NCBI GenBank assembly: GCA_025594325.1
Contig: JANHCV010000013.1
Span: forward strand, 558,001-622,000
DNA: 64,000 bases
Direction of reading: 5' to 3'
From: Blastocladiella emersonii ATCC 22665
Taxonomy: Eukaryota > Fungi > Blastocladiomycota
Shown here: positions 2,442-56,800 of the stretch, piece by piece
Position numbering within the stretch: position 1 is the first letter of the stretch
Layout: each line of letters starts with the position of its first letter
Program-made: the position numbers and the translations under genes
The notes under the pieces: model-generated
What the model was told of the DNA's origin: nothing
Database searches by the model: none
Seen by the model: the letters and a program-made list of their open reading frames with translations, nothing else

Positions 2442-3896
2442 CTCACCCAGCGCCTCAACACGGCGCTCATGCCCCGCGACCAGCGCGAGCAGCTCATCCG
2501 CGACGTGCACAACTGGGGTCACTCGGGTCCCGCAGCCACACAGCAGCAGCTCATTGTCCTCGGCCACAAATGGTCCGGCATGCTTGCCAACTGCCAGCGC
2601 GTCATTGCCGGCTGCATCCTGTGCACCCGCTTCTTGACAACGCGCCAGGGCTTCCACTTGATGCGCTTGATTGAGGCCGAGCTCCCGCTGGACCACCTGT
2701 CCATGGACTGCCTGCAGCTGCTGATCTCGCCCAACAGATACACGCATGTGCTCGTGATCATCAACATCTGCACCCGGTTCGCGTGGCTCCACCCGATCCG
2801 CTCCACATCAGCCGCCAAGGTCGCCTGCGGTTTCCTCACGACCTGCTTCCAGTTCGGCTTCCTGCGCATCATCCAGTCCAACAACGGCCCCGAGTTCGCC
2901 AACCAGATCATTGCCTCGCTCGCCTACATGGCCGGCATCGACCGCCGCCTCGTCTCGCCGTACCACCCGCAGGCCAACGGCGCCTCGGAGCGTCTTGTCC
3001 GCTTGATCAAGCAGATGCTGCTCCCCTCGCTCAACGGGCAGCTCGACCCCTGGCCTTCCATGGTCCCGGCCATCCAGTACGCCTACAACATGCGCATGCA
3101 CGCGCGTCACGGCTCAACACCCTTCTCGCTCATTTTCGCGCGCCCATCCAACGCGCTCCGCAACTACTGCGCGCAGCCGGCCCTGCGCAACATGACCAAG
3201 CAGGAGCAGCTCGCCCGCCTCAAGCTCATGACTGAGGCCGTGTTCCCCGCCATCGCGCAGCGCACCGCCAACTGCAACGCTGTCATGCAGGCGCGCATCA
3301 ATCAGCACCACAAGATCATTGCCACCGACATCCCCGCAGGCGCCATCGTCATGCGCATCACCACCAACTGCGCCTCCCGCGTCAACCCGCGCTACGAGGG
3401 CCCGTACACAGTGATCCGCCGTAACCAGGGCGGCGCGTACGTGATCAACGACTACCACAAGAAGATCTCGGCCAACACCCAGCTCGAGCGCCAGCGACAG
3501 CTGCTGCGGCTCGCTTCCAAGGTTGCCAAGCCCGCCTGCGCCATCTTCAACTACCACCAGAAGATCTCGGCCTACACCCGGCTCAAGCGCCAGCGATTGC
3601 TGCTGCAGCTCGCCTCCAAGGTCGCCGAGCCCCTCCATCTTCCACATCTTCCTTCAAGATCCAGCTCCCCGCCAAGCCTCGGCCAAGTAGTCGCAGGTTT
3701 CGCCCAAGAAGTCGCCGGCTGGCTCATTGCCCGCCTGCGCCGTGCACCGCCTGCCAACGCAGTGCACCACCAAGCTTGTCAGCCACTGCGCCTTCGGCTG
3801 GTGCCACTCTCCATTCCGCCGCTACGCCCATGCACGGTCTGGGAGGGGGTGATGTTAACCGACGCGTGTGGCAACCAGCCACCTGGTTGCATGTGA
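2310..3896 (+). pseudogene. Retroviral-type integrase (Gypsy), probably inactive
   Basis: HHCC finger (HNWGH...CILC), LPLDHLSMD, IIQSNNGPEF (second catalytic D reads N), YHPQANGASERL and GPY module (RYEGPYTV). Confidence 0.93.
3445..3631 (+). repeat. ~100-bp tandem duplication in the integrase C-terminus
   Basis: ctaccac(a/c)agaagatctcggcc...ctccaaggt(t/c)gcc occurs twice (DYHKKISANTQLERQRQLL / NYHQKISAYTRLKRQRLLL). Confidence 0.88.
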
Positions 3897-4097
3897 CCGA
3901 CCGTGCACCTGTTCCTGCGCCGCCTGCTGCCCGCAGCGGCGCTCCCGGCATTTGCATCCACGCTCCCCTCACCCCGCCTTGGGTTCGGGGCCGGAGGCAG
4001 GAATACACATCCCTGACTAGCTGTATCGTGGTCTCCTCGTGTCCCCCTCCTCGCCACGCTACAAACGTCATCCCAGAGCAACTCGGAAGGTACAACG
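3841..4097 (+). repeat. Polypurine tract (3841-3849) and 3' LTR (~3853-4097)
   Basis: gggaggggg is followed by TGTTAAC. The segment ends ...GTACAACG (imperfect TG...CA inverted ends) exactly where homology to a host gene family resumes. Confidence 0.7.
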
Positions 4098-5274
4098 TTT
4101 GAGCGAATCGCGTCGACTAGAGCCTCGCGATCATTGTGGAGAGCGTCCTTGAGGAGGGTAACAAAGTAAAACCGCCCGAGCAGCCCCACGGAATGCAGGG
4201 GAAGGGCGCGATCAAGCGGAAGCAACGTGTGTGCATTTTCAAGCTTGCCTGCGTAGAATTTAGTGACATTGTTGACAAAGCCAGCTTGGGCTTGGATGTC
4301 GCGATCAATTTTTCCTCGATGCTGAGCGAGCAGTACCACACGAGCTTGCGGATACAACTTGGCAATGGTATACAACGGGGTCAGGTCCCCGCCGCCATTG
4401 GGGTTGTATCAGCCGTGCGAGTAGAGCCACCCCATAACATCCGCCATGGTCTGGCAGGTCGGCGGGTACGGGTGCGCTTCTTTACAGAAGATGAAAGTTC
4501 CAGCATACTTGGTTGCCAGGTCAACTGAAAGCTGGTCCTGCTTGACATCAATTCGAGGCTAGGCATAGCTGGTCGAGTAGCTGTAAACTTCGGGAATCGA
4601 TCATATGCGCAGCCAATCTTGCCAATCGAGACAAACCGTGAGCAGCTGCGGCCAAGCACGTTCGATGTCAGCGAGAACCAAGTCAAGGAAGCTGACCGGG
4701 CTCGTTATGACCGCGCAAGCCGCAATAAGAAAGTAGACGGCAAGCGGATGCTCATAGAGCCGGCTCGGGCGGGCCGATTTCGCCCTGTCGACAACCGCAC
4801 GAAGATCGAAGAGCGGTAGGGTGTCGTCCTCCCAAAGGGATGCGTTGGTGACGGGTGAGCAACAACGCGCGCCGAGACGCAGCGGATTAGAGCGCGAAGA
4901 AAGGAGTCTGCGCTGAGGCGGCGAGCAGCGAGCCGCTCAATATCGTGCTCATCCGAGGGAGTAGGAACTTTCTAGCGCGAGCGGACCGAAGCACTAACCG
5001 CTGACCAGACGCTGGCGAGTCGCTCAGGCTTTGGGCTGTCATGGTTGACCTGGAATCGCTCGGAAGCTGGGTCGGAAGGAAAGTGTGAGATCTCAGCAAT
5101 CAACCAGCAAGAGAGGACGTGGATATCCGCGGACATGAGGTAGGTCGACCGCGAGGCAAGCAGGACCACCAAGCGCGGCTGAGCGAGCTGCCCAACCATG
5201 ATGGCGACTTTGGCCGGAAGGGCGGAGAAATCCATGTTTGGTGGTCGCCGGCTCGATTTCATAGAGTGATTCAT
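4098..5274 (-). pseudogene. F-box-like repeat-family gene, copy A, interrupted by the LTR
   Basis: N-terminus MNHSMKSS...DFSALPAKVAIMVGQLA and HTLLPLDRALPLHSVGLLGRFYF align to copies B/C. There is a stop at 4972 and frame breaks, and the frame runs into the LTR at ~4097. Confidence 0.8.
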
Positions 5275-5435
5275 GAAATTGACGAAGTGTGCTTCATGGG
5301 GTGCCGCGAGACCTCGAGCGAGAGCGAACAGCGGCCGAAACGCGTCGCGTCACTCAAATCAGTGTGAGTCGCCCGCGTCCCTACTCTCGAGAGCCCTTGA
5401 CCCCCTCAATGAAAACCATGTCAACTTCATGCAAC

Positions 5436-7105
5436 ATGCTCAGGACTACCCATGTACCCCAAGTCCTTGAGCGGATTCTTGTTTATGCGATCCAGCAACA
5501 CAGCGACGCGGCTGACACGGCGGGACTGCTCGAATACTCGCGTGTCTTGCCGAGGCCTCTAGCTCCACGAATCGATTGTGCTCTTCTAGAGTGCGCTTCA
5601 AGTCTTTCAGTTGATGGCGCGACACAACACGGCAATGTCGCGGCCCTCAGAAAACGAGCTGCTCTCAAATTTGGGCTCACCAGCTGCTCCCTTGAAGCTT
5701 TGGATGTCGCCATTCGCGGCGGGCACCTTGGAGCGCTTGAATGGTGGCGCGCTTCGGGCCTTCTTGACCTTACCCAAGTCAAATCGCACTTGGATCGCGC
5801 TCGGTACTCCTCGAGTCCATACGCCGCCCTAGGAGTTGAGTTGGACCAAGTTCGCGCCCTTGACCACGGCATTGTTGAAGGCCTCGAGGACGGTGATCCC
5901 ATCAAGCTCTTTGCTGTGGATGAAGGCATCGACGAAATATGCGCAGAAGTCGCTTCCGGCTATTACACGACCCTCACGCTCCAAACGAGACCAATCACAA
6001 TGACTGGAATCGAGGCTCTTAACGCTGCAATGGCGAACCCGCTGCAGTTGATTGGGTCGTTTGTTGCACACAGCAGCACTCTCGATCTCCCCCGCTTTCT
6101 CGCGCTTCGATTCCCTCCGTCGTTGCACACAATCCAGTACGTTGACGAGTGGCTTGGTACAGTGCCGCAGTCTCACTCTGTGGAGTTGACTCCGATGCGC
6201 TGGCCCCCGGGTCTTGAAAATCTGCACCTTGTTTCACCAAGGCTTTCGACTACATCTCGGTATCTCTTTCAAGGCCTTCCTAGGTCTCTCCGATCCATCA
6301 TTGTTGTGGATTCTGCGCTTGATCAGAACGCAGCGTCCCAGCTGGCTCGAGTTCTTCCACCGTTCCTCCAAAAGTTCAAGCTTGAGTCGCAGGGCCTGTC
6401 TAATGACTGGTTTGCGTCAGCAGTGCCGCTGCTTCCAGCCGCTCTTCAAGAGTTGTCGATGGGAAAGCTCAACGCTGGCGGCTCCCACGGATCGGCCGAG
6501 GAGACACTCCACGCGAGCCCAGCCGCGCTTCCCCAGTTTCTCAATTCGCTGACTCTCGCAGGTGAGCTATTGACCTCGCAACTGGTCCATACCCTCGGCA
6601 CCGAGGCTCGCTATTCTATGCGATCGCTGAAGCTTCGCTTCGACACAGCCACGGACGAAGCCCTTGCTGAAATTGCTCACGTATTACCCCCGAGGATCAG
6701 TGACTTGGAGGTCCGCATGCAGACCTCGCGCATTGGCGCCTTGACGCTCATCCCGCGGCTTCCGCGGTCGCTTTTTACACTCTACCTGTCGGACGTTGAC
6801 CTTGGGCTTGAAGGTGCTCAACTACTTGCGCAGCACACGCCGCCTAGGCTCCACAAAATTGCTCTTTGTGCGGCCAATCTCGACGATGCAGCTGCCGCGG
6901 CTCTCATTCCAGTTCTCTCTCACGGCTTGAGTGAGATCAACTTGAGTCCAACGCGATCACGGATGTCGGGGCGCTACCCCTTGCCGCGCGGTTCCTGGGT
7001 TATGGCGTCAGGTTCAACATGTGGGGGAACAGTGTTTCGGACGATGGCCACGCGGCGCTCAACGCTCCCTTTCCTCCCTGGGACTGGGAAATTGACGATG
7101 TGTGA
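5436..7105 (+). CDS. LRR (RNI-like) protein with F-box-like/ankyrin-like N-terminus, copy 1; apparent 1-nt frameshift at ~6948
   Basis: MLRTTHVPQVLERILVYAI, GHLGALEWWRASG and LPRSLFTLYLSDVDLGLEGAQLLAQHTP repeats. Paralog-like NAITDVGA...GNSVSDDG continues in another frame to TGA at 7103-7105. Confidence 0.8.
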
Positions 7106-7478
7106 TGAGACCCGTTTGGGGCAAGAATATATGTTACGTTTGAAGCGCTGAAAAGACTCAGTACTTTGATGATACCGTCAGGGATTAATTTACGGGGCCA
7201 GCCGCGACCAGCCTCAGTGCATCTCGAACTCAGCGATTTCTGCGCTGTCATGCCGCACTCAGCAAAAAATGACTTCCAAATCCTCGCAACAACAGCCACG
7301 GACTGGCGGGAACGAACGCTTCCGGCTCACGCCGGACGCGTCAATTTATCATGTGATGCCCGCGTGAGGCTGGTGCGACGTTTGGGATGTGGCGCAAGTC
7401 TCGCGCCGCCGCTCGCTTCGCTTCGACCGCATGTAGCACCTTACCACTTTGACTAGGACCACGTAAACTTCATGCAAA

Positions 7479-9125
7479 ATGCTCAGGGCTATTCATGTGC
7501 CCGAAGTCCTCGAGCGGATTCTTGTTTATGCCATCAAACAGCACGGCGACCCGGCCGACGCGGCGGGGCTCCTCGAGTACGCGCGCGCTCTGCCGCGGGC
7601 CCTGGCCCCGCGCCTTGAACGAGCGCTCTTAGATTTTACGTCGAGTCTTTCAATCGACGGGGCGACGGAGCGCGGCAATGTTGTGGCCCTGAAGAAGCGG
7701 TCCGCACTTGGGCTCTCGCTCACCAGCTGCTCCATGGTCGCACTGAGAGCCGCCATTGCCGAAGGCCATCTCGAAACACTAGAATGGTGGCGCGCTTCGG
7801 GTTTGCTTCATGCCGACGAAGTCCAAGATCTTGTCGATTACTACGAAGACCACACCACGAGTCCGCACGCGGCGCTGGGAATGCCTTATCGCGACGACGA
7901 TGACAACTTCTGCCCAGCGGCTGAGGTCGACGAAGGTATCGATGAGCTCTGCCTCGATATCGCGGCAGGTAGACGTGCAGACCTCTACCTTGACACTTGG
8001 TCCATCTCCATGGCGGGAATCAATGCGCTCAGTGCCGCCATGGCGAACCCTCTGCAGGCGGTCCGAACGGTTGTTTTTCGTAACTGCACCATCGATCTTC
8101 CTCGTTTACTCGCTCTTCGACTTCCGTGAACGGTGCGCAAGGCCGAATTCAATGCGCACTGGATCAGACAGCCGCCACCATCGTCTCTCGCGGAATCGAC
8201 ACCAATGTGCTGGCCACCGGGTCTCGAATCGCTCGTGATTGGGACACGGCGGATGTCAACTGCCATCCCCTACCTCTTCCACTCTTTTCCCGCGACGCTT
8301 CGCTCACTCCATATCGAAGGCGTCGATTGTGACGACCCAATGATCCTTGAAATTGTTGACAAGCTTCCCCCATTCCTCAAAGAGCTCGATCTACTATCCA
8401 GCTCGACTCGAGCTGGGTTCATGGCTGTCATCGCTCGACTTCCAGCAACGCTCGAAAGCCTTTCAATCGGATCGGATCCCATGGTTTGCACCGGGGACGC
8501 ACGTGCTTCATTATCGCTGCACAACACTCAAGGCAGAGTTCCCGTGCTTCCGCAGCTGCTTACATCGCTGGAGTTCGCAGGTGATGAGCTCGACGTTGAG
8601 TTGATCCACACTCTTGGCATTATTCCGCGCTACTCGCTTCGGAAACTTTCACTGCGCTTCAAAGAAGTCAACCACGAGGCAATGTTGGAGCTTGCCCGCG
8701 TCCTTCCGCCGAACCTCGAGGAATTCGTCGCCCGCTGTTGTTATACGTCCCGCGCTGGCATTATGTCGCTCATTCCAAGCCTTCCTCGAACGCTTACCGT
8801 GCTCGATCTCATTGACTCGGACATCGGATGCGAGGGCGCTCAGCTCCTTGCTCAACATCTGCCGCCCCGCCTCAAAGAGTTGCTGCTTCGCTCAACGAAC
8901 CTCGACGACGAGGCCATAGAGTTCTTGGCACTCGCGCTTCCGCAGACTCTCGCTGTTCTCAACCTATCCCTGAACACAATCACGGATGCCGGTGCATACT
9001 TACTCGCCACTTGCTTGCCGCCGGGCATCACCCAGCTCGGAATGTCGGGCAACGTCATTTCTGACAAGGCCGAGGCCACACTCCTCGCCGCCGTACCGCG
9101 GGTTTCGAACATCCGACACTGTTGA
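7479..9125 (+). pseudogene. LRR (RNI-like) protein, copy 2, with in-frame TGA at 8127-8129
   Basis: ORFs 7479-8129 and 8133-9125 share one frame and align colinearly with copy 1 across the stop. LPRTLTVLDLIDSDIGCEGAQLLAQHLP-type repeats are present. Confidence 0.85.
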
Positions 9126-14430: not shown

Positions 14431-14670
14431 GCCGGCCTGTGACTGGCAGCAGTCGATCGTGCCTCGTAGAAATACATCCCACACCCGTCTCGTGACACCG
14501 TTCTTATCCCACGACAATCGATGCAGGGCAAAAGGGCCTCGGCACTCTTCGCGCGAGCTCAAGGAAGCCAGAAAAGTCAGGGGGATGCGTGGAAGAGCAA
14601 GTACCGGTAAGACTGAGTTGAACAAGACATGACTAGAGAAACATGTATTCATAACACATCAACCATCGGA

Positions 14671-17600
14671 TCAGATTGACTCGTCCGCGCTGCGAGGACA
14701 TGCGGGAAACAACGGCAGCATGAGGGCGCGCTTGAGGTCCGACTTGAGGGCGTACATGGCCACTCTCATTCCCGAATTGTATCGCGGGCCCTCAGGCAGT
14801 GAGCGGTCCGGTGCGGCCGCGTGGCAAAAGTCGAGGTACTCGCCAATCGCGGCTCTGCATTCGGGAGCGCACATGATGGGGAACTGCCACACGCGCTCGC
14901 GTTCGCACGCATCGTTGGCGTCCTGAACACGCTTGCGCGACTGCGTGAGTCGCGGGCGAAGCGGACTTGGGCTGGAGCGGGTGCGCGAACACGAAGCCGA
15001 TGTCAAGCGCAGGCGGGATGCCGGCGGCCTTGCCCTGCGCGGAAATTACGATGGGGCGGTGGACGAAGAGCACAACAATGGTATCATCCGGGTTACCTGA
15101 ATCCACAAACTTGACGGCACACGCGCGGCCGTCGTTTGCGGCGGCAAAATTAAAGACAGAGTGAAGCGTGTCCTTGAGCATCACCGCGTTCCACGCGCCA
15201 AAGGCGCTGCCGCGATTGGACTGCTCGCCCATGCGTGCCGCGCCGGCTGGCCACTCTGTCGCCGTGTACAAGCCCCAGAGCGAAGCGAACGCGGCGGCAT
15301 GCAAAAGCTCAGATACGATTGGCCCAGTCGCGGGAAGTGGGAACGGAGCAAAGCGCGGGACAAGTGGACCGAGTCCAAGCATCGGCGACACGGCGGCTGC
15401 AAGTTTCTGCACCGTGACGGTCACAATGCGCTTGCGGCGGTCGATGTCCCGTCAACAAGCAAGGCAACGTCGCCGCGAAACTGCGCAAGATCGACGTTGG
15501 GCACGGGCTTGACCTCGGCCTTGTCGCGGCCGCGCGGGATGCTCAAGACGAGCCGCCCAAAATTGTCCAATTCGTAAAGACCCATGCCGTTTCCTTCGTG
15601 AACAAGCCGAAGAATGGGAATGAACCAAGGCAGGTGGCGAAAGGGTTCAACGGCAGCCGCAGTGTAGTCGAAAACTCCCTGGATGCCAAGACGAACGCTG
15701 GCCATGGACACGGAGTGAGTTGTGACCGCATCCAAAGAAAATGGCGCAGCGCCTTTGTCAAACGGCAGCTTGTTGCTGATAAGCTCGAACTCATCGCAAG
15801 GTTGCGCGTCCAAAGCGTAGGTCCCATGAAGCGAGAACTCCGACCTGGTAAAAGACTTGGGGACCGCGCTTCCAAGCTCCCAGCAGACCCGCACCGTCCC
15901 ACGCTCCGAGTCGTAGTCGACGTTGAGACACTGGCTGTAAACGACCCCGCCGCCGTCGTCCGAGCTCGGCTTCATGGCCACCCGAATCGCGCACGCCACG
16001 TAATTGCAGTAATACGACTCGAGAAGCGTGAAGGTTGCGCTCGCGCGGTAGAGGCGACGGCTCGACGACGGGCTATCTTGTTTCAAGCCAAGGTATCCAG
16101 CAAGAAGTCGTTGCTCCGTGACAAAGTCGTTTGGCGACGGGCCGAAAAAGTGTTGAGACCACATTCCACCCATGTCGCGCGGTGAGAAGGGAAGCGAAGT
16201 GTAAGGCGTCGTTCCAGCCCAAACAAGTCGACGAGCGGCCATGGCGTAAGCCAATGCCTTGACGCCAAAGGCAGGGGTCTGCATCGGCCCGACTACAAAG
16301 ACGAGAAAGCAGTCACATGTCAGTCAAAACTGGCGCGCGGGGAGAGCAGTAGTGAAAAAAGAACCTACAGCGATCGTACTGCTCCTTGGGCGTCAAGGGA
16401 GACCCAGCGTCTCCAAATAAGAGCTCGTGCAGGCTCTGAAGCTCCTCCGACGCGCGAATCGAGACGGGCACGTTGGGAACGGGCAGCTTGCAAAAGGTGA
16501 GTTTGTGGAAGCTTTGAGTATTCGAAGCGTTGCGCTTGTTTGGAGCGAAAGGCTGGACGCGCGAGAGCCAGTGCCCCAACTCCCCGCCGTCCTCTTCAAG
16601 CACAGAGACGCCAAAGACGAGAGGGATGATGGAGACGGGAAGTCCAAACAACAGCTCGATGTACTCAGCAACGGACTCGGTACATGCGCGGAATGTACCG
16701 CTCGGGTAGAAGCAAAGCATCGAGCGGTCGCCTGCGGTGGGATGGTTGTACCTGAGCACGTGGGAGCCGTGAAGCAAGATGTTTCGCGCTCCGCAGCGGT
16801 CCACGAGCTTCGACGAGTCGACGACATCGAAACGGAGCCAGGTGTCGGCGAGGAACTGCTCCATGACAAGGACGGCGTCGCTGAGGACAAAGCTAAGCTT
16901 GTGAGCCGCCGGCGAATCAAGCGAGAACGCGTCGGACAGCGCGCGAAGCCAGGTGCGCACATGGTCGAACATGGCGCTCTGAATCCGGCCACAGCTCACG
17001 TCAAGAAAGAACCCGTCGAGCGGAGCCGTGTGAGAGAAATCCGCGAATGTCGGGTTCACGACCGTGCTCGATGTGACGTGAGGACCGTCGGCTGGATGTG
17101 CAAAGGGGGAGCTTGGGCGACTCGAGGTGCAATCGGCCAAGAAATACGAACCGCTCTCAACGACCGACTGGATCTCGCACCGCGTGCGAGCAACAATCGA
17201 AGGCTTAAGCTTCTCCGCCGAGCTCATGAAGCACGGCGATTCCAAAGTCTACATCTTCATGTCAACGAAGCGGGTGTGGCGCAACCGCAATCGCATTCGT
17301 ATCGACAAGGCCGGAAAGCCAAATCTGACGCGTTTTCAAGAGCTCGGAGGCCGAAAGGGCCAAGTCTGCATTGTCCAGCCAGCGCAGCCAGCAGTCGTGG
17401 GCCGCACGAAGCGTGGCGACATCCATGACGCGCACCCGGGTCGAGTCGGACAGCCAGTCAAACTCGATACACGCGCGCATTTGGTCGCACCAGAATGTGA
17501 GCGCCTGCTGCTCGAGAAGCTCCGAGAACCAGAGCTGGCCGACGAAGCGGTCGAGAATGTCGCGGTCAAGGTCCGAGTGCATGAGAGCGTGAAGGATGAG

Positions 17601-51298: not shown

Positions 51299-52502
51299 TC
51301 ACGTGATTGATTGACGCGTCTCGAAGGGGCCGATATCAGCACGAGGCGCAAGTTCAAGGCCGAAATGGATGTATTGAGTGTCGGATGTGTAATCAAGCGT
51401 AATGCTCGCGAGAAGCCATAAGCGGATCCGAATCGCCAGTTCCGTGGTGTTCCCCCGCTTTTTCAGCATCTTGGCGCGCTTGAGGAGACTCGCGTACGAG
51501 TTACCGTGAGCAAGGATCACTGCGCTACCGTTGACGATGTGAGTGGCTGAGTAGGGCAGTTGCGGCGTATCATCCATGACGGGAACGGGGCGGATCGAGC
51601 GAGAGGGCAGGCTGGTCGGGTGCTGGATGAGCGCCATGGTCGTCTGTTGGAAGAAGTCGAGCTCGTCAGGCGCGTCGCTTGCGTCCAGATGCGGCTCTAC
51701 GCCGTCCGACTCGGGCTGGAATGCGAACTCGTACATGCTCGACAGCACCGCGCTCTGCATGTCGCCCCAGCCAAGCACGGCGAAGAGGAGGACGAGGATC
51801 AACAATGCAACGGAGACCAGAAGCTCCCACACTTCCACGGCGACGACGGTCAAGATGTACAGCTGCGGCCCTTTGCGATACGCATACGTCGGGACGTTGG
51901 ACTTGCCGCGGAGCCACCCGCCCGTTTGAGCGGAAGAAGTCGAGAACATGGCCCACCCGTCGTTGAAATCGGGCGCAGCTTCCGAATCCGACGACCCAGA
52001 GTAGCTCGCCAGCCGCTGTTGCGCGCGCGACAGCGCTGTCGACCACAGCCAAGGATGCGCTCCATCGCCGACGTAGCTCTGATCCAAGCACCGGAGCGAG
52101 ACGGGCCATGGTTGCGGCGCGTCCTGGACCATGCCAACGAGGTCAACGACCTGGTCGGAATACTTGAGAGTGTCCGAAATCTTGGCCGTGTCGATGTTCT
52201 TGATGTCGGTCTCGCCGAACGACTTGACCATGGTGCGGCAGACCTTGGCGCCGCTCAAGTAAGTCAGCAATGGATATGACGTATTCGTCAAGCGGAAGCG
52301 GGAAGTAGGCACGTCGTTGGGTCGGATCGCGTCGTAGTAACTCATTGCTCGGCCTGGACTCCTAGTCCCGTCCACCGTCAAAGTGCACGCACAGGGAGAC
52401 TCGCCGATGCCCGAGGACAAGGCGACCTTGACAAAGTCGGGGGTCGGAGGCTGGGAAGTAAAATTGAAGGCAACGGCTTAGGTGCTGTTGAGAGGAACGG
52501 TG
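51299..52502 (-). pseudogene. 3' part of a membrane-protein gene interrupted by the TIR element
   Basis: 373-aa ORF with a TM segment (VWELLVSVALLILVLLFAVLGW). The frame extends to the element edge through one TAA at 52478-52480. Confidence 0.7.
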
Positions 52503-52744
52503 CATCACCAAACCGCGCCTGCTGAGGCCCCATGGATCCAGGGTGGATCCACCTCGAGCCTTCCAGCGCTGGATCCAGCATTAATCTAGCGCTGGATCCA
52601 GATTTCGCAGACTGGACCCACCATCATGAAAGGTGGATCCAGCCTTGACTGAGATGAGCTGGAATGAGCTTCGCGGCGACCTGGATCGAGACGTTGATCC
52701 ATTTTCTTGAAAGTCGACCCACACCTTGATCCACGCGCCCTGGA

Positions 52745-53305
52745 TCAACTTGTTGTAAATGTAGTTCTAGGCGTCGATCTACGTCTATATCCAACTCTTG
52801 CGCAGGCAGAACCAGGAGCTGATCGACGGTGAACATGGTGGTGAAGGAACTCGTGCGAAAATGCATCGAAATGGTCGCAACGACCCAGAAAAGCATTTGA
52901 GGGAGCCGAACGCAACTCGACGTGTTCGTGCTGCTGCAGGATGAGCTTGAGCCCGTCACCAAACGTCGTGTTCGCGGAAGGATCGCGGTGGTCCACAAAA
53001 TCGAGCGAGTTGGCGATCTGCGGCATCATGAGCAGCGTGAGGCTCGCAGCGTCGTCGTACACGTTGATCAGGTACTCGGTGTACCCGCCCTGGTGCGCCG
53101 ACGATGGCCGGTTCCCGTTCGGCGCGACGTGAAGGAAGGCCGAGATGGCCGACAGCGGCACGATGTGGAATTCGCACGTGGCGGGTTGCGTGGGACGGAG
53201 AGCAACCGTCTGCCCGGCGTTAAGGCCCGGCGGAACGACGTGCGGCACCGACTGGTAGAGGTGGAACCGCTCGACGAGCGTGAGCTCAAGTTCAATGTCG
53301 TCCAA
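52745..53305 (-). CDS. Hypothetical protein inside the TIR element
   Basis: 186-codon ORF with coding-like composition (EFHIVPLSAISAFLHV...YTEYLINVYDDAASLTLL). No family recognised. Confidence 0.4.
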   Translation of the reverse strand: MDDIELELTLVERFHLYQSVPHVVPPGLNAGQTVALRPTQPATCEFHIVPLSAISAFLHVAPNGNRPSSAHQGGYTEYLINVYDDAASLTLLMMPQIANSLDFVDHRDPSANTTFGDGLKLILQQHEHVELRSAPSNAFLGRCDHFDAFSHEFLHHHVHRRSAPGSACARVGYRRRSTPRTTFTTS

Positions 53306-53837
53306 CTTAGGTCAGAGGGCCAGGTGCGCGGATACCGCTTGGCGACGCGCACCCGAGGCCATCAGCAAGCTCGAAGTCTTAACTGAGACTCATAAAGCTT
53401 CAAGATGCGAAAGCTCTCACGACCGCCGTTACGACTCTTCACGCGAGGGGAGCGCTGCGGCGCGGCTTGCTCGCCGACCAGGTCCGTCTCGGTCCACTTC
53501 CAAAGCTCACGGCACGGCCACACGCTTGCAGCGAGTGATTCATGGATCATTCATAGAGTGCGACGTCGCGGTACCGTCGCCGGGAGGAGAGAGCGCGGCG
53601 CTGCAGCGAAGCGCGAGCCGCAAAACGCGTCGAAGCCAACGCCACGTGAGCGCGTCGATCGTTTCAGCCGCGTTCGCTTTTCGCGGACTTCGCGCCGCGG
53701 CGGCTCGCACTCTCTCGCCCCACCACCAACAGCGCATCCGCCCAGCGCCGCCACGCGTCCGCGGCACGGTGACCCCACGGTACGCGTCTCTCCCCTTCTC
53801 CGAGGTCTCTCGCTCCTCGCGACGTGCATCCACAGCC

Positions 53838-55716
53838 ATGCCTCGAGACCCGCGATACGCCCTGCACGCTTCGGCGGGTCTTGCGCCTGCTGCGCTTGAT
53901 GCTCGCGCCGCGTTCCCACGCCCTCCGCGCCGGCTGTCCGTTCGCTCGCTCGCTGACGCGTCACACGGTCACCTTGCTCTCTTTCGTAGCCTTCGAGATG
54001 TACATCAAGCTGCAGCAGCGCTCGTGGGGGCCGTCGTGACGCACCCGCGTCGATCCTGACCATGGTCGCGACAAGGTGCGCCGTGTGCGGCTCGGTCTCC
54101 TGCTCCCACGGGCCGAGACTCACATGTTCGCGAACTCCATCGGTAGGACGCCAAGTACGCCAAGCGGCTACGACACGCGCCGCGCCTTCGCCCGCCAGGC
54201 CAACTCGTGTGCGACGCGCTCAAGGCTACACGGTACGGGCCTTCTCCTTCGCGTTCTCGGCGTGATTTGCGCTGATCGTGGGCACGGACAGGCTCCGAGC
54301 TCCCGAGCGACATCGCTCGTGTCGTCGGCCCAGATCCTGGCGACGCGGCCCGTCCGTTCGCGCCATGTGTATACTTCGCCCGATCCCTTGCTCACTTGTC
54401 TCCGCCACGTCACCCATAGCCTCGGTCAACCACGACAAGCCTCAACGGTGCCCCAGAACACGCGGCGAGGTCTCGCTGCTCGGGTCGTCGCTGGTCTCAA
54501 GCACGCGCCTGGCTGCACGTGCGAGTCCGAGTTCGAGGTACGCGACTCGGTCGGCGTGCTCGCGGACCGAGACTGACACGGTCGACTCGAGTAGGTTATC
54601 CAATACGTCAAGCTGCAGCGGTAAGGGTCGCCTCGTCGTCCGCCCTTGTGGCGCGCGCGAGGTCATGCGGCGTCGATCTCATACACCCGCATCAAGGACT
54701 GGAACCTCAAGTACAAGCTCGGGATCAAGGATATCGAGGCGTTTGGGAAGGAGGTACGCGGACGCGGTGTGGGTCGCCGCGGTGGCAGTTGCTGATGCCG
54801 CTTCCGTGTCGCTCACCAAGGCCCTGCAGACGATCCGCAAGCCGTTCAAGGAGAAGACGGAGTGGTTCGACCTCGTGCATCCTCACCAACAAGGTCGGCG
54901 AAAAGGAGTCGCTCACCAAGCAGTGGCTGGTTGGCGAGGCGCCCGAGGAGCTCCACCGCGCCACGCTGGCCATGGTCGATGAATACGACGACGCCGAGCT
55001 CGACATGGATTTCGCCGACGCCGACGTCGATGCGGCGATGTCGGTCCGCGCGTGCCGTGGTGCTCACCCGCTGTACCTGTCCTTCCTCGACCGACTCCTC
55101 TTTGGGCAGGCGAACGACATGGCCAACGCTCGAGGCTCGAACCAGTCGTCGCACGGTACGGCTTTGCTCACCAAGTCGCACTCGATCCCGTCGCTCACGT
55201 TCCGCACTGTAGCCAAGCGCATGGCCGGCTACGCGATTGTCAACGACCTCAAGCTGCTCGACATCAACAAGCCCTTCCCAATCGACGGGTCAAGTCCGGT
55301 GTGGCGCGTCATGGCCGCGGTCGCTGTCCTTGTACGTTTTGCTCTTGCAATCTGCCGGGTTCCTCCGTTCGCCTTCGCCCTCTCTGACTTCACCGCGATG
55401 CACGCTCGCCGCTTTCTACTGTGCATGGCGCATCACTGGGAGCGCGTACCAACAAGGTATCATTGTCGGCCTGACCAAGGAGGACGCCAAGGTGACGCTC
55501 GCCGACTACTACGACGCCTTCCTCGTCTCGCGTACGGGTTCGGTTTCCGTCGCCAAGCGCATCTACCTGGCCTCGCGGCTCCGCGCGCTGTTCAAGCGTG
55601 GGATCCTCAACATCAGCCTCGCCAAGATCGCCCAGCAGAACACGGGCGTCGAGACGACCAAGACCCAGGCGGCTATGACCGTCGACATTGCGAACGACAT
55701 CTGCCCCGACAAGTAG
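53838..55716 (+). pseudogene. Intron-rich gene of unknown function inside the TIR element, apparently frameshifted
   Basis: Many GT(A/G)CG...AG segments separate coding-like exons (FEMYIKLQQRSW; DWNLKYKLGIKDIEAFGKE; NDLKLLDINKPFPID; GIIVGLTKEDAKVTLADYYDAFL...DICPDK*). No DDE motif recognised. Confidence 0.55.
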
Positions 55717-56254
55717 CTGCGCCATACCACATCTCGGGTGGCGGGGTGTGCAGCGGGCGGTGCGAGCGCATCAAGGGCTGGTTCCCTTCCTTCACCTCGA
55801 CCTCTCTGCGCACTCCATGGTCATCGTTGTGGGGCGTACGCGTGTGTATATATTGAACCGTTCGACCCTTGATTCGCTCGTGGATCTTGAGTGCGCTTGT
55901 GTGGATTGCGACGTGGATCAGCGCCTCGACTCGGGCTATAACCAAATGGATCCACGCCAAGGTCGAGTTGATCGTCAAACTGATCGACGCAAGGATCCAT
56001 GTTTATCGTGGCCTAGTTCCGTGCCTGGATTGCGATATTACTTTCCTGGATCCAGCTCGCGATCCACCTTGACCAAAAGCTGGATCCATCTGAGAGGTCC
56101 GCACGGTTTGCGGGTGGATCCAGCTCGCCCAAGCTTGATCCACGTTTGATCCAGAAAAGTAATATCGGGATCCACATTCCCCCGAGGTCCATCCAGTCCA
56201 CGGCTGGATCCAGGGTGGATCCACTTCAAATGGCTGGGGCACGGTTTGGTGATG

Positions 56255-56800
56255 TGGCAGACGACTGAGATGTTTGGGTGCAGCAGTTACTGACCTTCCC
56301 GCTGAGCGACAGTCCCATGCCAGGAAACGTCACGTCGGGGAACGCACGAAAGTAAATTCCTGTGCCGGCCGCAAACTGGTCCGCTTTAGAGTCGGCGTCC
56401 CGCTGCTCTCTGAGGCAAAAGTGAGGAACTGGGAGCCAGCCTTTCTGTAGGACGTCCTGGACTTACCACAACGTGTTCGCCATTCGGACCCCGCGCGCGT
56501 TCATCGCTCGCTGCTCTGAGACCGGGTGCGCGATGCGGGCCACCACGGTGCCCGCGGAGCAGAACATCGTAGTCGGCGGCCCGGAGCCCGCTGACGCCGT
56601 CGTCGATGGTGTGGACTTGTGGGCGACGTCGCTTGCGCTCCACGATGGGACCAAGCCGCCCGCGCGCGAGACGTTGCGGGCGCTGATCGGCATAAGGGGC
56701 GTCGCGCTCAAGGCGGCCGCGGGCCCGCTCCCCCCATCGCGCGAGGGCTTGCCCGTGCAGTACCCAGCACGGTTCCTGAGGGGCGGCAAGTCCACATGCG
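56255..56800 (-). pseudogene. 5' part of the gene interrupted by the TIR element (true start uncertain, possibly up to ~57300)
   Basis: Frame ADQFAAGTGIYFRAFPDVTFPGMGLSLSGKVSNCCTQTSQSSA runs up to the right TIR and joins the 52502-side frame after excision. Confidence 0.55.

Follow-up and report, generated by a model that had tools for sequence, protein, structure and literature searches.

An undescribed family of terminal-inverted-repeat transposons with palindrome-rich arms in Blastocladiella emersonii

The segment at positions 52503–56254 of a 64-kb stretch of Blastocladiella emersonii ATCC 22665 DNA (64,000 nucleotides, hereafter the window) belongs, as a single decayed copy, to a multi-copy class II family of this fungus, that is, a family of cut-and-paste elements with terminal inverted repeats (TIRs). 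To our knowledge, next to nothing has been catalogued of the mobile elements of Blastocladiomycota, an early fungal branch. The genome paper of this strain makes no mention of transposons, and the transposon family is previously undescribed. That the family is truly mobile, with TIRs and a 2-bp duplication of its target, we consider very likely. A preliminary description of the segment, made from its letters alone, had proposed a new family or a cargo-carrying non-autonomous element; the copies, their ends and an empty site agree in supporting that proposal.

Copies were examined in the window and in 12 other loci (L001–L012) of the B. emersonii assembly, which were fetched around proteins paralogous to the element's genes together with some further relatives. 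The element, 3752 bases (3.75 kb) in length, aligned from base 1 to base 3752 in L001, L003, L004, L005 and L009 with 83–99% identity, the L004 copy spanning the full length with an internal deletion. Partial alignments were obtained in L002, L006, L007, L008, L010 and L012. All readable ends stop exactly at CATCACCAA(A/G)CCG, the unit having the form CATCACCAA(A/G)CCG...CGGTTTGGTGATG, and in every copy homology breaks off at the CATCACC terminus, with unrelated flanks beyond it. A check for different ends in other copies found the same ends at the 12 further loci, and a check on whether the arms exist only as solo repeats found them paired as the ends of whole units.

Read depth, assessed on contigs of one sample sequenced in four DNA runs, was roughly 5–30 times higher within the element than in its flanks, and loose ends of contigs begin exactly after position 56254. 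One contig of single-copy depth (runs X1 and X2) joins 52532 to 56205, forming a mini-element of ~80 bp from the two tips, and its junction falls at a 20-bp module, TGGATCCAGGGTGGATCCAC. Both the internal-deletion and the mini derivatives keep both termini. An empty allele of the window insertion was not seen in the contigs of the four runs. Separately, loose ends of run X4 at 53313, 54932 and 54944 carry loxP-like linker letters (ATAACTTCGTATA...) and are an artefact of the mate-pair library, not genomic.

The product of insertion can be read at one locus. The L003 copy, at 3443–7211, sits within another dispersed repeat, of which an uninterrupted paralogue in L008 provides the empty site (this repeat is also present at L001 2355–2543 and L007 11090–11416). 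The flanks of the L003 copy, 3043–3442 and 7212–7611, match L008 727–1123 and 1122–1521 with a 2-bp overlap, and the best ungapped fit is obtained after taking out exactly 2 bp, giving the empty site ...aacGGAGccc.... Filled and empty sites differ by the element and 2 bp only. Because of this comparison, it is proven for one copy that integration duplicates 2 bp and that CATCACC/GGTGATG are the true termini. An alternative placement of the ends at CACC..GGTG, with duplication of AT in a CATG target, was rejected, as the empty site contains no CATG. A duplication of 8 bp or longer was likewise rejected, as no direct repeat is present in the 8–40-bp flanks. The 7–10-bp duplication that is a hallmark of hAT, P, Mutator and Merlin elements is absent from the flanks, and at the empty site the overlap amounts to just 2 bp. 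The TA target duplication characteristic of Tc1/mariner/IS630 is found in none of the flank pairs of the seven full copies, which are given below (left/right).

Window copy: TG/TG
L003 copy: GA/GA
L004 copy: TCG/TCG
L001 copy: TC/GC
L011 copy: AG/CG
L005 copy: GC/TG
L009 copy: GA/CG

The preliminary description had claimed a 2-bp duplication, with TG on both flanks. TG does abut both ends of the window copy, and the 2-bp length stands for L003 by virtue of the empty site, but the remaining flanks tell against a uniform duplication: a perfect 2-bp repeat is found in only two of the seven full copies and a 3-bp repeat (TCG) in one, and in four the duplication is imperfect or absent, with a one-base match in two and no match at all in the other two. 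A diverged paralogue of the L004 site is compatible with duplications of 2 bp and 3 bp alike. The L009 copy is a chimera whose left arm comes from the other subfamily, described below, and exchange between copies may therefore account for its unmatched flanks. The several copies lacking matching flank dinucleotides would also suit a quite different reading, in which no transposon is involved and a dispersed two-gene family has spread by segmental duplication, bracketed by repeat arrays by chance. We regard this as extremely improbable, because homology ends at the identical base on both sides in every copy amid unrelated flanks, nothing but the element and 2 bp separates the single empty site from its filled counterpart, and deletion derivatives large and small retain both termini.

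The features of the element in the window are as follows.

52501–52502: left copy of the target-site duplication, TG; the 2-bp length is backed by the L003 empty paralogous site
52503–52519, plus strand: left TIR, CATCACCAAACCGCGCC, a terminus common to all copies with a left end
52520–52760: left arm, with nine GATC-core 8-bp palindromes, five of them exact TGGATCCA, together with the variants TGGATCGA, TTGATCCA and TGGATCAA
52745–53351, minus strand: small orphan gene in the form found in the window copy, defined by copy alignment and by the intact form at L003:3859–4296
53352–53837: spacer, defined by its position between the two divergent frames
53838–55716, plus strand: large, intron-rich orphan gene, defined by the paralogues P0001–P0010, exon mapping and copy alignment
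54622–54624, plus strand: TAA, common to the window, L006 and L002, replacing CAA of most other copies
54871–54872, plus strand: junction left by the loss of 23 bp between two CTCGTGCA repeats, a frameshifting deletion found in the window copy only
55870–56237: right arm, with 15 GATC-core motifs, six of them exact TGGATCCA
56238–56254, minus strand: right TIR, read on the minus strand as CATCACCAAACCGTGCC; the contigs of other copies diverge exactly after 56254
56255–56256: right copy of the target-site duplication, TG, adjoining the right end

The inverted ends are 17 nt long and 94% complementary with one mismatch, in keeping with the 16/17 match of the preliminary description, and the window contains their pattern nowhere else, with 0.02 occurrences expected by chance. 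The terminal pentanucleotide is CATCA and not CACTA or CACTG, which bears out the earlier statement that the terminus is not CACT(A/G). Including the termini, the arms extend over about 52503–52760 on the left and 55870–56254 on the right, and they are densely populated with palindromes. The window contains 12 TGGATCCA sites where 0.49 would be expected; all but one of these, 11 in number, lie inside the two arms, no more than ~250 bp from the left end or ~390 bp from the right. The hexanucleotide GGATCC, which had been described as occurring 13 times and only in the arms, is indeed present 13 times there (five left, eight right), but a fourteenth site lies in the interior at 55601, in the last exon of the large gene; nine further sites are scattered over the remaining 60 kb of the window. 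The 20-bp module TGGATCCAGGGTGGATCCAC occupies 52533–52552 and 56205–56224, ~30 bp inside each end, and is repeated in direct rather than inverted orientation between the two arms. A search of the element against Rfam returned no match.

Directly to the left of the insertion lies a 373-codon minus-strand frame (51299–52420) in a stretch of lower GC content, without a Pfam match. Restoration of a host frame by excision was considered and rejected, as taking out the element plus 0–4 bp never extends this frame. The sole product of in-silico excision is an R-rich frame of 138 aa on the plus strand, and Pfam searches with the flanking frames gave no match.

A second subfamily, designated B, is represented by a 3.3-kb copy at L011 8981–12313 with 77–80% identity to the main subfamily, and is the older of the two. 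Its termini are the same, CATCACCAAGCCGCGCC and CATCACCAAACCGCGCC, and its arms contain no TGGATCCA and carry TCGATCGA, TCGATCCA and TGGATCGA in its place. Between the subfamilies, the outer 13–17 bp are kept and the 8-bp palindrome is changed at positions 2 and 7. Frozen tips combined with shifted palindromes fit the pattern expected if the tips were the substrate of cleavage and the arrays were putative binding sites co-evolving with the protein that recognizes them. Subfamily B also retains the small gene; of the large gene it has the 5′ part but not the region encoding the C-terminal 270 aa.

Both genes inside the element are orphans with a coding composition like that of host genes. The ancestral small gene is a single exon of 146 codons, corresponding to 52919–53351 in the window and preserved intact at L003:3859–4296, with GC contents of 0.67, 0.41 and 0.85 at the first, second and third codon positions (GC1, GC2 and GC3). 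In the window copy, a 1-bp deletion near 53308, close to the start of the gene, removes a base that other copies have, and the stop codon is lost (TAG to GAG near 52917) such that the frame runs on to 52745; the minus-strand open frame at 52745–53305 reported in the preliminary description is present. The L006 copy has the same 1-bp deletion and lost stop but other flanks than the window copy. Because the two share their defects and differ in their flanks, a copy with a damaged small gene was still mobilized. Divergence in the spacer between the two divergent genes (53352–53837) is high, with 0.32 substitutions per site among copies; we presume that the spacer is their shared promoter region.

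The large gene agrees with the intron-rich plus-strand gene of the preliminary description (53838–55716) and matches the annotated multi-exon model P0002 (325 aa). The models of this gene are ab initio and mutually inconsistent. Its confidently coding part is 54691–55716, encoding about 270 aa in exons D–H only, with GC3 of 0.83–1.0 and GC2 of 0.2–0.45. In the 5′ third (53838–54540) the composition is not coding-like, and the sub-lineages, which differ there by a 1-nt indel, have no frame in common. The TAA at 54622–54624 is either an in-frame stop, if exonic, or a new GT donor, if intronic. At 54871/54872, all other copies retain the 23 bases missing from the window, where the reading frame shifts. 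With both genes damaged, the window copy is defective. A 445-codon query spanning the large exons recovered ten paralogues with 68–99% identity on at least eight contigs, all from B. emersonii ATCC 22665 and all annotated as 'hypothetical protein'. Along the element, divergence among copies is two to three times lower in the 3′ half, which begins near 54690, than in the 5′ half. This holds for introns and exons alike, and the 5′ halves of the copies form two sub-lineages. This difference between the halves suggests a mosaic or recombinant history.

Neither protein could be assigned to a known family. Pfam searches with E up to 10 gave no family for either, with no match to DDE_Tnp_4, Myb/SANT or DUF6532, and NCBIfam gave nothing meaningful for both; the lack of a recognizable DDE transposase noted in the preliminary description was thereby confirmed in the two databases. 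Profile searches against the PDB returned matches only at E > 0.09. Among 5.8 billion clustered proteins, neither protein had a homologue outside B. emersonii; the small protein had six paralogues, all from this species. An exhaustive phmmer search of 1.84 billion representatives with the large protein found one foreign match only and no DUF6532 protein. This match, to a 6589-aa protein, was taken as chance, resting on a short W-x-L...G-I-x-D-I-E motif in fibronectin-like repeats. AlphaFold models built from shallow paralogue alignments were unusable, with pLDDT (the model's confidence score) of 29 for the large protein and 36 for the small one. The large protein (about 330–400 aa) is predicted to be mostly helical with no RNase H-like pattern, in a model that is unreliable at pLDDT 29.

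When a language model was queried with the last 280 residues of the large protein, DUF6532 (PF20149) proteins of Basidiomycota ranked first, with a score of 0.96 and 160–172 shared features. DUF6532 is listed beside the transposon-related domains KDZ, Plavaka and CxC2 in Ganoderma genomes (PMC8955403). The likeness comes from language-model similarity alone, and we treat it as only a lead, not a relationship: the DUF6532 proteins look like the C-terminal ~280 aa to the language model, with no match by hidden Markov model or phmmer.

Substitutions among copies are near neutral by codon-position counts, with a synonymous fraction of 25–38%. Pairwise ratios of nonsynonymous to synonymous substitution (dN/dS) range from 0.36 to 0.98 and are mostly 0.5–0.7, a modest signal of purifying selection. 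This pattern fits the expectation for genes that were constrained while active and later decayed copy by copy.

The search for a transposase covered all unannotated parts of the 12 fetched loci. An unannotated 500-codon frame at L011 18798–20297 (minus strand) matches PF02992 (Transposase_21, the tnp2/CACTA type) with E 7.6e-12; PF02992 is also found in its homologues (~30% identity), one of which has PF18759 (Plavaka) as well. Given this match, which we take to be a transposase relic, transposases of the CMC type are present in the B. emersonii genome. The ends of the element that holds the frame were not found at this locus, nor was a link to the TGGATCCA family, and the two orphan proteins showed no similarity to the frame or to twelve PF02992 proteins. 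The same locus contains an array of TTGCGCGAACC units at 14670–14870. No longer version of the element was found among the 12 loci.

Other mobile-element sequences lie at these loci. An unannotated 948-codon frame with a PIF1-helicase domain (L003 1–2844, plus strand), beside the repeat hosting the L003 copy, possibly belongs to a Helitron-like element. Unannotated frames of copia-type retrotransposons at L008 7645–10572 and 10061–11773 (minus strand) contain RVT_2, retroviral SH3-like and Pol beta-barrel domains. None of the PIF1-helicase, copia reverse transcriptase and tnp2-type frames is inside, or demonstrably tied to, the TGGATCCA family. An element of ~430 bp resembling a miniature inverted-repeat transposable element, with imperfect ends AGTTGAAG.../...CTTGAACT and internal tandem units of ~25 bp, is present at L002 8314–8738, L008 7239–7614 and L011 12557–12938; the one in L002 interrupts the right TIR of the transposon copy there and has a 5-bp duplication, GTTTG.

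Our favoured explanation is that a transposase would bind the arrays of GATC-core 8-bp palindromes in the 250–390-bp arms (TGGATCCA in the main subfamily, the TCGATCGA type in the older one), pair the two ends, cut at the CA/TG termini and integrate through a 2-bp staggered cut. We lean slightly towards mobilization of the family in trans. The partner may be a longer element of the CACTA/Mirage/Plavaka (CMC) kind whose transposase recognizes the conserved tips, an identification that we hold tentatively and rate a little below an even chance. Supply in trans by such a partner is proposed because the orphan proteins resemble no transposase and the structural hallmarks fit CMC elements. On this view, the two orphan proteins would be accessory proteins specific to the family, binding the arrays for instance, or the products of captured genes.

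Several observations weigh against this explanation. The terminus is CATCA, unlike the CACTA/CACTG of CACTA elements proper; no autonomous partner with these ends was found among the 12 loci; and the tnp2-type frame of L011 belongs to a different element, which has other repeats and in which no common terminus was seen. Moreover, nearly all copies keep both genes, with host-like composition, and the 20%-diverged subfamily keeps them in part. Such retention, together with dN/dS values mostly of 0.5–0.7, is unusual for a mere non-autonomous derivative and would fit proteins through which the element encodes its own mobility.

The same observations bear on the possibility that the element is autonomous, with one or both orphan proteins being an undescribed type of transposase and the other binding the palindrome arrays. 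Almost every copy retains the two genes, and subfamily B, at 77–80% identity, still has the small one; their composition is host-like (GC3 0.83–1.0) and dN/dS is below 1 in most pairs (0.36–0.98); and the lack of a longer version among the 12 loci is as such an element would have it. We nevertheless regard autonomy as unlikely. The large protein is almost all helical, without an RNase H-like pattern (in the unreliable model of pLDDT 29), the synonymous fraction of 25–38% is near the neutral expectation, copies with a frameshifted small gene have still spread, and the C-terminal 270 aa of the large protein, its confidently coding part, are missing from subfamily B. Less likely again, and doubtful in our view, is the stronger proposal that a helical protein of ~350 aa and one of 146 aa recognize GATC-core arrays and cut CATCACC termini, in what would be a new superfamily of eukaryotic cut-and-paste elements, restricted to date to Blastocladiomycota.

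A speculative extension of this last proposal starts from the ApT in the middle of each site. Adenine methylation has been reported in early-diverging fungi, and Dam sites tie the transposition of IS10 to replication. If adenine methylation occurs in B. emersonii, methylation-sensitive binding at these ApT-centred sites could by analogy tie transposition to replication, as in IS10.

At least 16 gene models annotated as 'hypothetical protein' are explained by this family, which also offers a clean case in which the terminal 13–17 bp are frozen and the subterminal motif has changed between subfamilies. If the orphan proteins are mobility proteins, they would be a new transposase class. If a partner of the CMC/Plavaka type exists, the range of that group and the diversity of its terminal sequences would be extended, and a natural pairing of putative array sites with candidate binding proteins would be at hand as well.

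Among known systems, two groups of cut-and-paste elements invite comparison. CMCT lineages, which take in CACTA/EnSpm, Mirage, Chapaev and Plavaka, have 5′-CA..TG-3′ termini and 2–5-bp duplications, and relatives of the PIF/Harbinger-ISL2EU-Spy (PHIS) group have 0-, 2- or 3-bp duplications and two genes in autonomous members (PMC12730594). Non-autonomous elements are sorted in Repbase by structural features of this kind (PMC4455052). The present family could be a non-autonomous member of the PHIS group, which its duplication of 2 bp, possibly 2–3 bp, and its two-gene layout would suit, since PHIS duplications are 0, 2 or 3 bp (PMC12730594). We judge this improbable: neither a DDE_Tnp_4-type transposase nor a Myb/SANT protein was detected (Pfam, E up to 10), the duplicated bases are TG, GA and TCG as against the typical TA/TWA, and CA..TG termini are described as a hallmark of CMCT.

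The likeness to CMC elements, and to Mirage in particular, is broader. It takes in the CA..TG termini (CATCACC...GGTGATG in all copies), short TIRs, a short duplication (2–5 bp in the group, 2 in Mirage and 3 in CACTA, against 2 bp at the empty site here, with imperfect flanks in four of the seven full copies), subterminal arrays in both arms and deletion derivatives. The differences are the CATCACC terminus itself, repeats built of 8-bp palindromes with a GATC core, and the lack, in both element proteins, of a DDE transposase with C(2)C and H(3–4)H motifs (PF02992/PF18759). In En/Spm, the subterminal repeats are bound by an accessory protein, TnpA. Non-autonomous derivatives such as dSpm and Ds keep the termini and subterminal sites, are mobilized in trans and include internal-deletion and miniature forms. 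Unlike these, the family described here keeps its two orphan genes in nearly all copies, and in part even in a subfamily diverged by 20%. Taken together, the structural hallmarks suggest that, within the CMC group, the family is closest to the Mirage-like part.

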